Positions 53,181 to 61,697 of a stretch of DNA of 64,000 nucleotides are shown here, piece after piece. The notes under the pieces were generated by a model that saw nothing but the letters and a program-made list of their open reading frames with translations, searched no databases and was not told where the DNA came from. The stretch is from contig JBLDXI010000009.1 in assembly GCA_047495785.1 (NCBI GenBank), positions 1,364,001 through 1,428,000 of the forward strand, given 5' to 3'. This stretch comes from Lepidodermella squamata (Eukaryota; Animalia; Gastrotricha). The position numbers and the translations under genes are program-made. Position 1 is the first letter of the stretch; the number at the start of each line of letters is the position of its first letter.

Positions 53181-53969
53181 GCTGGAAAATTCCCGTTGTA
53201 TCTCTTATTGTTCCTTTTTCAACGTAGTGCGACGATGGCTCGGTAATAACGGAGATGAATTAGCTTATAGCACAGGACTTTGGCTAGTATTGATTCACTT
53301 GTTGACGATTGACGAAGCGACGCCTCGACGGGGCAATAAAAAAACGAATTGATAAACAGCAATAAACACTTGCTGCGCAGCATGATTCATTTGCTCGGCA
53401 AAGCCATGGCATGTATGGATAATACAATGGTGTCGGTTGCACGGTCAACGGTATTATTCAACGGTTATAAGGTTCAACTTGAATAATAAATATTGTGCAA
53501 TATCACATCCCCTAAAACCGTACTCAATTCGCGGTGATGATGAACTTGCGCTCCAAGTTGCGAATTCCTATATCTTTCCGCAATGTCAATCTCAAAGAAT
53601 TACCGAGTTGCGACACATTACCGAGTTCGACCAACAGCCAGACTTCAATTCATAAAAGTTGGAATTCGAGTATTTACCTAACTATTTTATTGCAGTCATG
53701 TATAGCTGTAGATTAGTGATCTCTTCTTGAAAATTATTTTGAGGAAAATTATAGACTTCAGATACACAGGTCAAGTTTCAAATTTTAGGCTCATTATTAG
53801 GTGCAAACTTTTGATTCAGCAATATTATATTAGTACCGGATTATTGAGTTATATTAAAATGAGTTTTTAAGCTGCACCGGAACTTGAGGATGAATCAAGT
53901 ATCGAAATGAAAGTTTATCAGCTTGCATCATCTCCTCCCATCTTTTGCTGCAAGAAACTAGCTGCGAAA

Positions 53970-56900
53970 TCAAGGGTCAAACGGGGTTTTCGGCTCATTC
54001 TCCATGATGTTTTTGATCCACGGAATGTGGTAAGAAACCGAAGTGTACATGCCAGGAACACCTTGGAGCAAACATTATACAGGGTGTTTAAAATGTGGCG
54101 CACACTGAATAACCTGCGGCAAATGTTTACCGCACAACACACTACAAACTATACACTGGACTACTGCACACTGACACCGCATTGAATTTAGCAGCGCGCT
54201 TTCATCAACACTAACTTTCCAACGAAGGATAAGTGACATGGTCAACGCCAAGTCGCTAACCACCCAGCACCAAGCTGAATTTTTTTTCATTATCGTTCGA
54301 TAGCCCAATGCATGCGCTACCAGGCTAAGTACTCGCGCCCGAAATCCATCCAGCCGTAATATTGTAAGAAGTCTGACTCGAAAACTTCAAATGGCCGTCA
54401 TGAGGCAGTAATTCTCTATAAAACGGGTGACATTCAGAGGATTGAGCTCCTTTGACCACTGGGCGGATTTTCGATTTCTGGACGTTGTCGTATAGCCCCA
54501 AGTCGAATCAAGACGAGTCACAACAGAGGCAAAAATAGTTCAAATACTATAGTATAGTATAGTATAGTATAGCAGTTTTTAGACAAAGACAGGTGTCGTA
54601 CCGACTACTCGAAGCTCCAAACCGCTGGGCGGATTTTTGATTTTTTGGTGTCGGTTAATAGCCGGTAGATGCTCTATGAATGTGGTCTCTCGCGCAATGA
54701 AATCATTTAATAGCATCGCAAAATAAATGCTCGCGAAAACGAGTCAAAATGGGCTCAATGGGGGCATTTTTCCAAAAACCGTAGCCATTGGGTCAGACGT
54801 GTAGTTCTAACCGCGTATTTGATTTTCGATTTTGTAGACAGCCCGACTAACATCCAATAGCATCCAAGCCACTAAAATCGATCCATAATATTTTGAGTCA
54901 AAAAGGGGGTAAAAAGGCAGTTAGTCCAGCGAAATTCTTCCGGTAATGGTTGTAAAAGTGGCCAAAATCGTGTGTCCTGGCATCTATCGCTTTAGCTGCC
55001 ATTTCGCCAATTCGTGGCATTTTTCCTCGAGCCTACAACCATGGGAAAGAGGACACTCGCCTGAATTTTTTGAGCTATAGCTCATTGTCGTGTGATGAGC
55101 GGGTGGGAAGTACCAGGTCAGCAAACTCATTTTTTAGGTTGGCAAATCATAACCATTTAAAAAAATCATATTTTGTCTCTTATATCGCTAACCGTTTATA
55201 ACATCGGATTTTTTTTAAATCCCCGCGGAATAACTCAGAGGAAGCTTGCCAGCAACTCGTCTGATCATAACCTGGGGTTTTGACCGCTCAGAGAATCGTA
55301 AAACTGTAGTTATCACGTCCGTCTGCATGAGTGGGGTTATTCTTCACTTCACGAATGAAGCCGTGAATACTGTTACTGCCAGAGTCTCTGAGCGGCTGAA
55401 CCCCCAGGATATGATCGGACGGGTCGCCGGCAAGCTCCTTCCGAGTTATTCCGCGGTGAATTTAACAAAATGCGACATTCAGAGCGGCACGCGATGTGAG
55501 AGTCGAAATCTTGTTTTTTCAAATGGTTGTCATTCAGGATCTTAACCCTTTCATGGCGGAATTATTTACCTGCGGTAGAAAAAATATTTAACAGCTGTTT
55601 TGGGGGTTTTCGAAGGCCCTGATCACGATTTTGAAATCCTTTTGTCTTTATCTATCACTGTTAGGGCTGTACAAAAAGAGGGCGAAAATAATAGCACTCG
55701 CACCGTACTGCCGGCACGGTCAACTACGGTGCAACTACGGTGCCGGTACGGCCGGTCATCTACGGCGCCGTAGCGATTCCGTAACTTTTAGAAAATTCCC
55801 CCTGACTTCAAATTTATGAAATCTAACAAAATATCATATCACCAATTAGGGATACGGATTGGCCAATAAGCTTAATATGAACCGGCGATAAAAGGTCACG
55901 TAAGCATTAATGAAAAATCAGGTAAAGGCTTCAGATTACAGTCCCGCTCCTGAAAACGTTTGAAAGCATGTATAACTGTGAAACGATATATTCAATCACT
56001 ACCTGGAGGTCGACAGTAACAAGGCGGAAACAAGAATGACGATTTCACTACGGTTCGAACTGACCAATGTGCCCTTGAAGTAGTTACACCTGTGATGACG
56101 AGCGCCAATAGGCTGATTTCAGACTAGACATTTTAGCCCGGTTTAACGGGTTTCTGAAACTAAATGGCCCATCCTGGGTAGCCATCGGCTTCCCTGGGAT
56201 CCCAGCTATCAGATGGATATGCTGGAACCCGCCCGCCTTCAAACACTAGGTCAACCTGGGTTCCCAAAGTTCCCCATAACATAGCATTTTAGGCTGATTT
56301 TAGAGTTTGGGTTCCAGCCCGGTTTAACGGGTTTCTGAAACTAAATGGCCCATCCTGGGTAGCCATCGGCTTCCCTGGGATCCCAGCTATCAGATGGATA
56401 TGCTGGAACCCGCCCGCCTTCAAACACCAGGTCAACCTGGGTTCCCAAAGTTCGCCATATCATAGCATTTTAGGCTGATTTTAGAGTTTGGGTTCCAGCC
56501 CGGTTTAACGGGTTTCTGAAACTAAATGGCCCATCCTGGGTAGCCATCGGCTTCCCTGGGATCCCAGCTATCAGATGGATATGCTGGAACCCGCCCGCCT
56601 TCAAACACTAGGTCAACCTGGGCTCCCAAAGTTCGCCATATCATAGCATTTTAGGCTGATTTTAGAGTTTGGGTTCCAGCCCGGTTTAACGGGTTTCTGA
56701 AACTAAATGGCCCATCCTGGGTAGCCAACGGCTTCCCTGGGATCCCAGCTATCAGATGGATATGCTGGAACCCGCCCGCCTTCAAACACCAGGTCAACCT
56801 GGGTTCCCAAAGTTCGCCATAACATAGCATTTTAGGCTGATTTTAGAGTTTGGGTTCCAGCCCGGTTTAACGGGTTTCTGAAACTAAATGGCCCATCCTG

Positions 56901-59900
56901 GGTAGCCATCGGCTTCCCTGGGATCCCAGCTATCAGATGGATATGATGGAACCCGCCCGCCTTCAAACACCAGGTCAACCTGGGTTCTCAAAGTTCGCCA
57001 TATCATAGCATTTTTGGCTGATTTTAGAGTTTGGGTTCCAGCCCGGTTTAACGGGTTTCTGAAACTAAATGGCCCATCCTGGGTAGCCATCGGCTTCCCT
57101 GGGATCCCAGCTATCAGATGGATATGCTGGAACCCGCCCGCCTTCAAACACCAGGTCAACCTGGGTTCCCAAAGTTCGCCATATCATAGCATTTTAGGCT
57201 GATTTTAGAGTTTGGGTTCCAGCCCGGTTTAACGGGTTTCTGAAACTAAATGGCCCATCCTGGGTAGCCATCGGCTTCCCTGGGATCCCAGCTATCAGAT
57301 GGATATGCTGGAACCCGCCCGCCTTCAAACACTAGGTCAACCTGGGTTCCCAAAGTTCGCCATATCATAGCATTTTAGGCTGATTTTAGAGTTTGGGTTC
57401 CAGCCCGGTTTAACGGGTTTCTGAAACTAAATGGCCCATCCTGGGTAGCCAACGGCTTCCTTGGGATCCCAGCTATCAGATGGATATGCTGGAACCCGCC
57501 CGCCTTCAAACACCAGGTCAACCTGGGTTCCCAAAGTTCGCCATAACATAGCATTTTAGGCTGATTTTAGAGTTTGGGTTCCAGCCCGGTTTAACGGGTT
57601 TCTGAAACTAAATGGCCCATCCTGGGTAGCCATCGGCTTCCCTGGGATCCCAGCTATCAGATGGATATGATGGAACCCGCCCGCCTTCAAACACTAGGTC
57701 AACCTGGGTTCCCAAAGTTCCCCATAACATAGCATTTTAGGCTGATTTTAGAGTTTGGGTTCCAGCCCGGTTTAACGGGTTTCTGAAACTAAATGGCCCA
57801 TCCTGGGTAGCCATCGGCTTCCCTGGGATCCCAGCTATCAGATGGATATGCTGGAACCCGCCCGCCTTCAAACACTAGGTCAACCTGGGTTCCCAAAGTT
57901 CCCCATAACATAGCATTTTAGGCTGATTTTAGAGTTTGGGTTCCAGCCCGGTTTAACGGGTTTCTGAAACTAAATGGCCCATCCTGGGTAGCCATCGGCT
58001 TCCCTGGGATCCCAGCTATCAGATGGATATGCTGGAACCCGCCCGCCTTCAAACACCAGGTCAACCTGGGTTCCCAAAGTTCGCCATATCATAGCATTTT
58101 AGGCTGATTTTAGAGTTTGGGTTCCAGCCCGGTTTAACGGGTTTCTGAAACTAAATGGCCCATCCTGGGTAGCCAACGGCTTCCCTGGGATCCCAGCTAT
58201 CAGATGGATATGCTGGAACCCGCCCGCCTTCAAACACCAGGTCAACCTGGGTTCCCAAAGTTCGCCATATCATAGCATTTTAGGCTGATTTTAGAGTTTG
58301 GGTTCCAGCCCGGTTTAACGGGTTTCTGAAACTAAATGGCCCATCCTGGGTAGCCAACGGCTTCCCTGGGATCCCAGCTATCAGATGGATATGCTGGAAC
58401 CCGCCCGCCTTCAAACACCAGGTCAACCTGGGTTCTCAAAGTTCGCCATATCATAGCATTTTTGGCTGATTTTAGAGTTTGGGTTCCAGCCCGGTTTAAC
58501 GGGTTTCTGAAACTAAATGGCCCATCCTGGGTAGCCATCGGCTTCCCTGGGATCCCAGCTATCAGATGGATATGCTGGAACCCGCCCGCCTTCAAACACC
58601 AGGTCAACCTGGGTTCTCAAAGTTCGCCATATCATAGCATTTTAGGCTGATTTTAGAGTTTGGGTTCCAGCCCGGTTTAACGGGTTTCTGAAACTAAATG
58701 GCCCATCCTGGGTAGCCATCGGCTTCCCTGGGATCCCAGCTATCAGATGGATATGCTGGAACCCGCCCGCCTTCAAACACTAGGTCAACCTGGGTTCCCA
58801 AAGTTCCCCATAACATAGCATTTTAGGCTGATTTTAGAGTTTGGGTTCCAGCCCGGTTTAACGGGTTTCTGAAACTAAATGGCCCATCCTGGGTAGCCAT
58901 CGGCTTCCCTGGGATCCCAGCTATCAGATGGATATGCTGGAACCCGCCCGCCTTCAAACACCAGGTCAACCTGGGTTCCCAAAGTTCGCCATATCATAGC
59001 ATTTTTGGCTGATTTTAGAGTTTGGGTTCCAGCCCGGTTTAACGGGTTTCGAAGACTCCCAAACGCATCGCGGATTGTCCACGTCTTCATATTAGACACG
59101 CCTTTGTAAGCAGATCGCTGCAATTAGTATTGAGTGCACCTATCCCTTGTGATTCAACGGATATACATTCAGCCCAAGCCATTCAGCTGGCTACATGCTG
59201 ACTTTTCGAAAATTTGTATCCTAACTGTGTTTTTCAGTTTTCGACTTGTTTTCAGGTAGCCTACCTCTTATCGACGGTGTATGCGAAAATTCGTGAAAAT
59301 CCCATTAAGGTTATCATGTTTTTAAAAATATTTTGAGCTGGCCGTAGCACGCGAAAATGCTACGTAGCACTGTGGTAGCGCTGAAATAGCAGTCGACGTA
59401 GCGCTACCGTAGCGGCCCCGTAGTTGTGCTATTTGAGTGCTATTATTTTCGTATACTGCCGAAATCGTCCTATCCGCCCAGCTGATTTCAGGCGATTTTT
59501 CGAGTACCCTAATTTCTGTGTCAGGTGCCTTCAGTTTTGGAATTTTAGATTATAAATTACTCCCATGAATGTCCCTAAGAATCCCCCTAACTTATATCAC
59601 CAAAAACATTCAGAGTGAAAAAGTTTTAGAGGCTCAGCATTCAGATCTGAATTCAGCTTTTCCAGTTATTGCTCGCGACAGTTTTTGCAGCGCAAAAATC
59701 ACGCACTCCGCCTATATAAGTCTGGGCGGATAGGACGAATTCGGCCGGTTTAATTGAATATCAATAGCGTCGTCACTTTTAATTTCCAACTCGAAAAAAT
59801 TTAAACAGAGGTCAATGAGACTATGGCGGACACTGTGGTATTTTTTGTTGGATCAAAAAATGATCAGAAACCTATGAAATTTCAAGTTGAAAAAAATCGA

Positions 59901-61697
59901 AATTTCATTTCAATCTCAGGTTAACTATTTTCAAATTGCTAGTATGTCCTGACCATGCAAGATAACGGTGCCCTGGTCTCAAAACCTTGTAGCCAACATC
60001 GAAGAGCAAAATTGCTCAAAAGGGCGATCAAGAATTCATCAAATTCAATTTTCTGCGATTTTCCAAAGTCGAAATTCCGAAATCGTCCTTCCCGCCGTGA
60101 AAGGGTTAAAATATGAGATCGTTGACTTCCCACACGCTCATCGCCCAAAGTTGAACTTTGGCTCAAAACAAATCAGGCAAGAGTCCTCTTTCTGACGATG
60201 CTGGCTGGAGGAAAAATTCTACGATTTGGCGAAATGGCAAGCAAAGAACTTGAACCAAATTTATAGGACAAGCTGTATTTGGTCTTCCTTAAAAAAAATC
60301 AGACTGTAATTTGTAATCAAAATGTTGACCTTAAATACCAATACTGCGCTATTCTGCTAGGAGACTACTGACATTCACCATCCTTCATGTGTTCTACGTT
60401 CTACGGCAGTATACAATAACAATCAAGGTTGATGATCGGGCATAAACAAACGCGCATACGCACTATATGACATACACATTAAATAATGGTGGGCGCGCAA
60501 AAATTTATTACACGGCATGGATACCATGGTAACCGTATCCCGCAAATTATTGTGTGTGCGCCACATTTGAAACACCCAGTAACTAGACACTTCATTGGTC
60601 ACATGAATAAAAATTACCACGAGATGCGCATTTTGTGGCTCCAAAGGAGACAGCCCCGGATAAGATCCACTTGCCAGCTACCCCTTTCTCCGCGGCAATT
60701 TTGTTAGATTTAGGTAGCTTGCAAATCAAAGGTCCACCGCTAACAGAATAACAAAAGTATATTTCAATTCAAGACTTGATTTGTTTGCTAACCTGTCACC
60801 GAAGCATGTGTCCCTTTCAAAGTCCTCGGAGATGGCGCAGATGATCTTGCCGTCCTTCATGTGGTCCCGTAAGCGCCAGGTTTTAGCGCACTGGTCAATA
60901 CTGAACACTGGGATTTCGATCTCAAGTGCAACGTCACTGCCTTTTCCTATATTTCCAATCTAAGATTGTCCAATATTTGATAAAAAAAAAATCGTTATAC
61001 CCTGCTCAGTGCGACCCCAACCGGCTGAAAATTATTAAGGATTCAAGTTGGTGATTTCATTGTTTTACATAAACTCACCGGCAATGCACTTTGTTCCAGT
61101 TGGGTACTGAAGACCGTGTGGGGGCAACGGCGAGATCAGAGCGTGCAAGTTTTTGTTGATAGGTCGCTTCAGCTTCAACAAAGCAATGTCCCAACCGTTA
61201 GCCAAATAAGAAGCTAAACAAAAAATAATGCCGAATTAAATACGCTATCGTTAATGACAAAACTGACAATTGACATTCTCGTGAGCCCAGAACTTTTCGA
61301 CCTCAATATCTTCAACCAAGGGGCTTTTGGCGGCTGTTGACATGCGATGAGCCCCAACGCGGACAAGCAGCTCATCGACTGGCACGCGTTTGTCAATGTC
61401 TCGGACGACACAATGCGCAGCAGTCAGAATCCATTGGTCAGCAATCAGCGATCCGCCACAAGCGTAGTGGTACTTGCGACCTGCCTGACGGCCGTTGGAT
61501 TCGCTGTGAATGTCCAGCACGCCGCGGGGCTTCAGTAAAGCCGCCATAAATTTCCACGAGTCTTCATCGGTTTCAACGCCGTGGATAACGCGACGGTCGA
61601 CTTTAAGGCCATTACGGCTATCCGCATCATTTTTGACAGGGAAATCGCACAGTGAGCCTGAGGCTAGAATACCGATGACGAATAATTTCAAAAACAT
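53970..61697 (-). CDS. Secreted trypsin-like serine protease 4; last intron expanded to ~6.55 kb by nested transposons
   Basis: Exons at ~60618-61697 carry the His, Asp and Ser motifs; the last exon GVPGMYTSV...PFDP* is at 53970-54061; no disabling mutation seen in the exons. Confidence 0.8.
54548..54572. repeat. (TATAG)5 microsatellite inside the mariner-type element
   Basis: Directly visible in the sequence. Confidence 0.8.
55546..60105. mobile_element. Non-autonomous piggyBac-type element, 4,560 bp
   Basis: TTAA-CCCTTTCATGGCGG ... CCGCCGTGAAAGGG-TTAA. Its removal restores a continuous palindrome arm. No transposase ORF seen. Confidence 0.88.
56135..59050. repeat. Satellite array: 16 complete 181-bp monomers plus 20 bp
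   Basis: AGCCCGGTTTAACGGG recurs every 181 bp (56135, 56316 ... 59031); no indels seen and only a handful of recurrent variant sites. Confidence 0.97.

Follow-up and report, generated by a model that had tools for sequence, protein, structure and literature searches.

The last intron of a trypsin-like serine protease gene in the gastrotrich Lepidodermella squamata holds four gene-less elements, each inside another, and a tandem array of 181-bp units within the fourth forms the innermost component. The gene, of digestive type, is coded on the minus strand of the window, that is, the whole 64,000-nucleotide stretch analysed here (G000:C9:1364001-1428000; assembly size, 121 Mb), and we designate the elements, from the outside inward, O, P, T, and X. 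It is probable that the locus was built by successive insertions of four different gene-less DNA transposons, followed by local tandem expansion in the youngest of them, X. The array belongs to X, and not to T, the piggyBac-type element whose termini also enclose it. The nesting, the boundaries, the TTAA duplication, the lack of a duplication for X, the copy numbers of the families, and the locus-specific monomer variants were all read directly, while the order of insertion was deduced from the nesting together with rising identity to sister copies. The components of the nest are listed below in window positions.

54080..60579, no strand: O, outer non-autonomous terminal inverted repeat (TIR) element, with TA at 54078-54079 and 60580-60581
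54080-54131 and 60528-60579, no strand: TIRs of O (52 nt), an inverted pair
54991..55545, no strand: left part of P (left arm, loop, and start of the right arm), placed from inverted-repeat pairs and family copies
60110..60277, no strand: right part of P (remainder of the right arm to the TA-CAG-type terminus); paralogous copies cross the 55545/60110 junction uninterrupted
55542-55545 (left) and 60106-60109 (right), no strand: TTAA target-site duplication; a single TTAA stands at the paralogous empty sites in P copies
55546..55680, plus strand: left end of T, with terminus CCCTTTCATGGCGG; 226 terminus matches, intact copies of 735-795 bp
59459..60105, plus strand: right part of T, ending ...CCGTGAAAGGG; contiguous with the left end in intact copies
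55681..59458 (+/-1 nt), plus strand: X, inner non-autonomous element of 3.8 kb, comprising 55681-56134, the array, and 59051-59458
55683-55699 and 59435-59451, no strand: subterminal inverted repeats (subTIRs) of X, 17 nt and perfect, 2 nt from the 5' end and 7 nt from the 3' end
56135..59050, plus strand: tandem array (16 x 181 bp) within X; a 20-nt direct repeat starting AGCCCGG stands at its borders

All of the features that a first-pass annotation of this DNA had listed were found where it had placed them. Genome searches with terminal motifs of O, T (18 nt, TTAA plus terminus), and X (the 17-mer, at no more than one mismatch) returned 61, 226, and 31 matches, respectively, against 0, 0, and 1 for reversed controls, counts so far above the controls that the termini are not attributable to chance. 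Many of the O matches formed pairs 1.7-4.5 kb apart, and paired X matches spanned 610-3,769 bp. Between 54078 and 60581 there was no transposase-like open reading frame (ORF), nor any ORF longer than 99 aa. An Rfam scan of 53500-61500 gave no match, and no further copies of the region were recovered elsewhere in the window by BLAST.

The first-pass annotation had proposed that the TTAA-flanked element is a piggyBac-type vehicle, with the 181-bp array as its native cargo, that seeds the array into genes, and the array does lie physically between TTAA-flanked termini. However, when the two supposed piggyBac arms were searched against the assembly, each proved to consist of two unrelated families. 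With the left arm (55542-56134) as query, positions 1-146 matched many loci at 86-94% identity, whereas positions 136/140-593 matched only about eleven loci. With the right arm (59051-60109; 40 candidates scored out of 306 first found), positions 408-1059 were matched in about 37 of the 40 scored candidates, at 85-93%, whereas positions 1-408/414 were matched only at C42, C10, and C20, at 98-99%. The division falls at window 55681-55687 on the left and at 59458-59464 on the right, and the arms are thus composites of short T ends and X arms. The ten intact T copies that we read were 735-795 bp long, TTAA-flanked, and continuous across the X insertion site; none contained a monomer, for which that length leaves no room, although the family is abundant (the 226 terminus matches above). 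Nor was T sequence present around the monomer-bearing loci C20, C10, and C42, nowhere else in the genome does an X copy lie inside T, and the element that directly bounds the array is a different one, which has its own termini and normally holds a single unit. The carrier model consequently retains almost no probability in our judgement, and T, the obvious candidate for a carrier, is a bystander around the array.

The X family is small, at about 15-20 copies, and X normally measures about 1.06 kb, with one 181-bp unit between short direct repeats. In the window it starts with GGCGAAAAT... and ends with ...GTATACTG, and the same bases recur across copies; the X-type 5' end reads GGCGAAAATAATAGC..., and at the other end the 3' subTIR is followed by GTATACTG. 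Identical termini within unrelated flanks were found in at least eight copies (C10, C20, C42, C32, C85, C21, C24, and elsewhere), and in the eight copies with unrelated flanks there was no target-site duplication (TSD). Comparison with the ten intact T copies showed that X had been inserted into T precisely, with nothing duplicated or lost beyond a 1-nt ambiguity (G). Duplication of a fixed sequence was considered as well and rejected, a single G being all that is common to both ends.

Tandem Repeats Finder described the array at 56135-59050 as 16.1 copies of period 181, with 98% matches and no indels. Arrays were present at only three X copies, with 16 units in the window, 10 at C20, and 4.75 at C42, where there is a small junction deletion. 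Long or numerous 181-bp arrays are absent from the genome, in which every match beyond these three arrays is a single unit inside X. The single-unit copies include C10 (arms 96-97% identical to those in the window), C32 (90%), C3 (about 80%), C24, and C2, and in such copies the unit is already flanked on either side by an imperfect direct repeat of 20-45 nt. A flanking direct repeat of this kind is a classical substrate for slippage or unequal exchange. All three arrays begin at the same internal position, X position 455. Across 22 variable monomer columns, no derived state was common to the arrays, while private variants occurred in many units of each. Moreover, in a maximum-likelihood tree the monomers sorted strictly by locus, requiring 2 label changes, the minimum possible, against a mean of 11.8 after shuffling, and 0 of 200 label shuffles gave as few as 2. 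Taken with the restriction of arrays to three X copies, this sorting indicates that the arrays grew or were homogenised in place, and the same observations run counter to the idea that ready-made arrays had been seeded into genes. Three 362-bp blocks of the window array were 100% identical, which suggests growth by duplication of multi-unit blocks.

Two considerations weigh against separate growth at each locus: branch support in the monomer tree was modest (78-86), and concerted evolution could erase the traces of an inherited array, such that the three arrays need not have been born independently. An alternative is that an array-bearing master X transposed and the three arrays were inherited, with young single-unit copies such as C10 representing collapses and the variants stemming from later homogenisation. 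In keeping with this, the three array-bearing copies all belong to the youngest X subfamily, in which arms are 96-98% identical, and their arrays have the same starting phase at X position 455, but that phase follows anyway from the flanking direct repeat. Older X copies (73-90% identity) are all single-unit, the arrays have no derived variant in common, and in the monomer tree the first C20 unit clusters with the lone unit of C10, as expected if the arrays grew from a one-unit ancestor. We consider inheritance from such a master copy unlikely. It is highly improbable, furthermore, that the junctions or the length of the array are artefacts of misassembled repeats. Arrays 98% identical across 2.9 kb are difficult to assemble, and the analysis worked from assembled sequence; yet the TTAA duplication is matched by paralogous empty sites, the X insertion is precise relative to more than ten intact T copies, the splice sites are intact at both ends of the intron, and X arms and array are arranged alike at two other loci. 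Growth of the array in place within X is accordingly the reading that we carry forward. It resembles descriptions of satellite birth from internal repeats of transposable elements, in that a direct-repeat-flanked segment of X expanded into a tandem array and the arrays are scattered at euchromatic, genic positions (PMC9659126, PMC12628747). The scale here is nevertheless tiny, with three arrays and about 31 units, and does not yet amount to a classical satellite.

The elements around X were resolved by comparison with their sister copies. T is about 786 bp long (55542-55687 plus 59458-60109) and non-coding, and its termini form a 14-nt inverted pair with one mismatch, beginning CCCTTTCA and ending TGAAAGGG. 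Uninterrupted paralogous copies of P have a single TTAA at the T insertion point, which proves that the CCC...GGG element duplicated TTAA, as the first-pass annotation had held; its superfamily call also holds, T being classifiable from TSD and termini as a piggyBac-type miniature inverted-repeat transposable element (MITE). Like other piggyBac MITEs, T duplicates TTAA, has 14-nt termini that start with CCCTT, is short (about 786 bp) and non-coding, and is abundant. It differs in having no autonomous partner found with the same termini, and in merely hosting the array-bearing X in place of carrying the array itself. The genome contains 78 matches to PF13843 (piggyBac DDE), and no autonomous piggyBac with T termini was found among them, the check covering only the best-preserved of the genome's families. 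That best-preserved family is represented by L081-L084 (G000:C55, C44, C67, and C73), which are about 98.7% identical over 2.6-2.8 kb, each with a 353-aa open DDE frame and with a shared right end before TTAA; it looks like a recently active autonomous piggyBac family, with a terminus unlike that of T. A pair of T termini in proper orientation was also observed at G000:C19:3281105-3283475, with a spacing of 2,371 bp that is three times the normal length. There is no piggyBac DDE match on contig C19, and this long pair is probably a T copy with a nested insertion.

P is a foldback MITE family of its own, separate from O. In its palindrome, 54990-55297 pairs with 55382-55541 plus 60110-60246, and the right arm is thus interrupted by the TTAA-flanked element, as had been described before. 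The whole element is about 723 bp, and the same span is covered by copies at at least eight loci (C15, C54, C23, C3, C20, C42, C1, and C56). Full copies have about 31 nt beginning TA-CAGT at the end of the left arm, and the window copy lacks these terminal nucleotides. P is almost wholly palindromic, as are foldback and Tc1/mariner-derived MITEs, and differs from them in the missing left terminus of the window copy. At L062 (G000:C15:526145-526902), P is present as two adjacent or nested copies, one of which shares its internal starting point with the left-truncated P of the window, hinting at a left-shortened subfamily. The earlier description of a four-level nest is upheld as to the nesting itself, but P being a separate foldback MITE, there are at least five levels.

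The outermost element, O, has ends that, including the TA (54078-54131 versus 60528-60581; 54 nt), are 81% complementary. The first-pass annotation had reported CAGGGTG TIRs at 54080 and 60579; the inverted, TA-flanked ends are present, but the right-hand one has CTGGGTG, differing at position 2 of the element (CTG for CAG). The TA/CAGGGTG ends do mark a real TIR family, other copies of which are TA-flanked too: L087 (3.9 kb) and L088 (1.8 kb) have TA at both ends and are non-coding, and TA adjoins six of six termini in the three O copies read. The adjoining TA and the termini make a Tc1/mariner-type assignment of O plausible. As in MITEs of that type, TA stands beside CAG-type termini in both O and P, and O has 52-nt TIRs. 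Certain features detract from this account of O. No empty site was found for it, and the TA is therefore inseparable from the terminus; the window copy of O has an interior with nothing in common with the other copies of its family, matching L087 and L088 in the TIRs only, while the interiors of those two are related to each other; and none of the three O copies read (window, L087, and L088) contained a transposase ORF, no genome search for Tc1/mariner transposases having been made. In each of these respects O departs from typical Tc1/mariner-type MITEs.

Further observations concern the O family. Many of its copies are 1.7-2.0 kb, TA-flanked, and without a transposase ORF, and one pair of O termini lies 4.8 kb apart on C54. 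L088 (G000:C74:472920-474806) matches several staggered stretches of L087 (G000:C4:407900-411930) at 66-79%, a pattern suggestive of internal repeats in L087; no array was detected in L088 by Tandem Repeats Finder. The left half of O in the window contains an (ATAGT)x5.8 microsatellite (54544-54572) and two copies of a motif of about 23 nt, CTGGGCGGATTTT... (54461-54483 / 54624-54648), that resembles a subterminal motif of T, CCGCCCAG. The rest of this left half gave scattered matches to other repeats in the genome search.

The four elements and the array show a gradient of identity, as follows.

O: arm to arm, 81%
P: to the nearest copy, 85%
T: to the nearest copy, at most 93%
X: to the nearest copy, 97-98%
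Monomers: to each other, 96.7-100%

Because identity rises inward, sequential nesting fits the data and transposition of a ready-made composite does not. The genome contains no second copy of the whole composite, and this, with the lack of any other X in T, leaves nothing to suggest the movement through the outer TIRs that the first-pass annotation had envisaged; the composite does not act as a single mobile unit. In the proposed course of events, O, a TA-flanked Tc1/mariner-type TIR element, would first have entered an intron of about 54 bp, and the foldback MITE P would then have landed inside O. T, as a piggyBac-type MITE of about 786 bp that duplicates TTAA, would next have entered the right arm of P, after which an X of about 1.06 kb, with its 17-nt subTIRs, would have integrated into T without duplication of the target. 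Finally, the lone 181-bp internal unit of X, bracketed by the 20-45-nt direct repeat, would have been amplified to 16 copies, presumably by slippage or unequal exchange, with multi-unit blocks being duplicated.

The placement of the nest in a protease intron, also part of the first-pass annotation, was confirmed by GT/AG splice sites and by a Pfam Trypsin match. The exons and the intron concerned are the following; in addition, DIAL and GDSGGP motifs are present in the later exons.

61254-61697, minus strand: first protease exon, with the Pfam Trypsin match (E 7.7e-12), a signal-peptide-like start, and TAAHC
60618..60739, minus strand: penultimate protease exon (SGGPLICK...ASRG in minus-strand translation), completing the GDSGGP active-site motif
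54062..60617, minus strand: last protease intron, 6,556 bp, with GT donor at 60617-60616 and AG acceptor at 54063-54062
53970..54061, minus strand: last protease coding exon (VPGMYTSV...FDP in minus-strand translation), with the stop at 53970-53972

Subtraction of 6,502 bp (the insert plus one TA) leaves an intron of about 54 bp, which matches the other short introns of the gene. Just upstream of the protease gene is a terminal exon of a cytochrome P450 (PF00067; 61946-62698, minus strand), the best relatives of which among database proteins are 36-41% identical, one being CYP2U1-like, from Branchiostoma.

We then considered which class of transposon moves X. Since X has conserved ends and inserts without duplication, rolling-circle transposons are the first candidates, and at least 41 Helitron_like_N matches, in which the open frames are long, were counted in the genome. 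A canonical Helitron (5' TC, 3' CTRR, A/T target) is ruled out by the X termini in both orientations. Hallmarks of Helentron-associated (HINE) elements are subTIRs of 11-17 bp, the 5' one 2-4 nt from the end and the 3' one 38-60 nt from the end; a palindrome after the 3' subTIR; a 5' inverted repeat complementary to the subTIR; a left-flank microsatellite; central tandem repeats; and insertion at TT or T-rich targets without target-site modification (PMC4067079, PMC7492417). In X, the subTIR is 2 nt from the 5' end, there is no target-site modification, and central tandem repeats are present; at the 3' end, the 6-nt palindrome GTATAC lies within the last 8 nt. Our best guess, held tentatively and at somewhat less than even confidence, is that X is a rolling-circle, HINE-like non-autonomous element. 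Mite HINE-Mo, Drosophila DINE-1, and oyster Cg_HINE are likewise non-coding and without TSDs, with the subTIR position and, less clearly, the short palindrome after the 3' subTIR in common with X, with central satellite-like repeats (181 bp in X) of variable copy number, and with insertions into other transposons and gene introns (PMC4067079, PMC7492417).

This assignment meets with several difficulties. The 3' palindrome of X is only 6 nt; its 3' subTIR is 7 nt from the end as opposed to 38-60 nt in HINEs; T or TT preference was not seen in the flanks of 8-11 copies; and the left arm of X has neither the 5' inverted repeat nor the microsatellite of HINEs, containing instead a small unrelated hairpin and two 11-nt direct repeats. 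Most X copies have one unit and no array. No Rep gene was found within 100 kb of any X terminus (31 subTIR matches, 41 Helitron_like_N matches), and the 31 subTIR matches, from a search limited to at most one mismatch in 17 nt, included no long terminus pairs. In addition, the X arms form imperfect inverted repeats reaching about 70 nt, with repeated CTACGG motifs, a cut-and-paste-like trait that HINEs lack. Those arms, the joined ends of which fold into a long hairpin, and the missing T-rich target would suit a non-autonomous element of Crypton type (tyrosine-recombinase), or else a TIR element of the cut-and-paste kind whose integration is unusual in leaving no duplication. We rate this possibility as real though well short of likely, given that autonomous partners with X termini were not found in any class and that X has four HINE-like traits (the position of the 5' subTIR, the central repeats, the lack of a duplication, and, less clearly, the short 3' palindrome). 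A broader proposal, that X is the non-autonomous partner of an unusual duplication-free lineage (candidates being Rep-Pif1-GIY-YIG Helitron-like and Crypton-type elements) and that its 181-bp unit expanded independently at three loci, strikes us as doubtful, although conceivable.

Intron growth by nested insertion and the derivation of arrays from a transposon segment are both already well documented, for example in HINE/DINE-1 and oyster Cg_HINE, and the locus, apart from being unusually clean, is an ordinary example of non-autonomous transposons nested in one another, with array growth in place. For those annotating similar structures, the arms around an array need testing against the genome before a carrier is named. 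In the compact protease gene, a 54-bp intron has grown about 120-fold via successive nested insertions, and the exons, catalytic motifs, and splice sites are all intact despite them. The locus also shows a tandem array arising from one segment inside a transposon, with short direct repeats at the borders of that segment. The point of wider interest is which enzyme moves X: if X does belong to an unusual duplication-free lineage and its unit expanded independently at each locus, its copies, with 1, 4.75, 10, and 16 units, would offer a small series at base resolution in which the birth of a satellite could be followed in nature, within a class of transposon that has scarcely been described.

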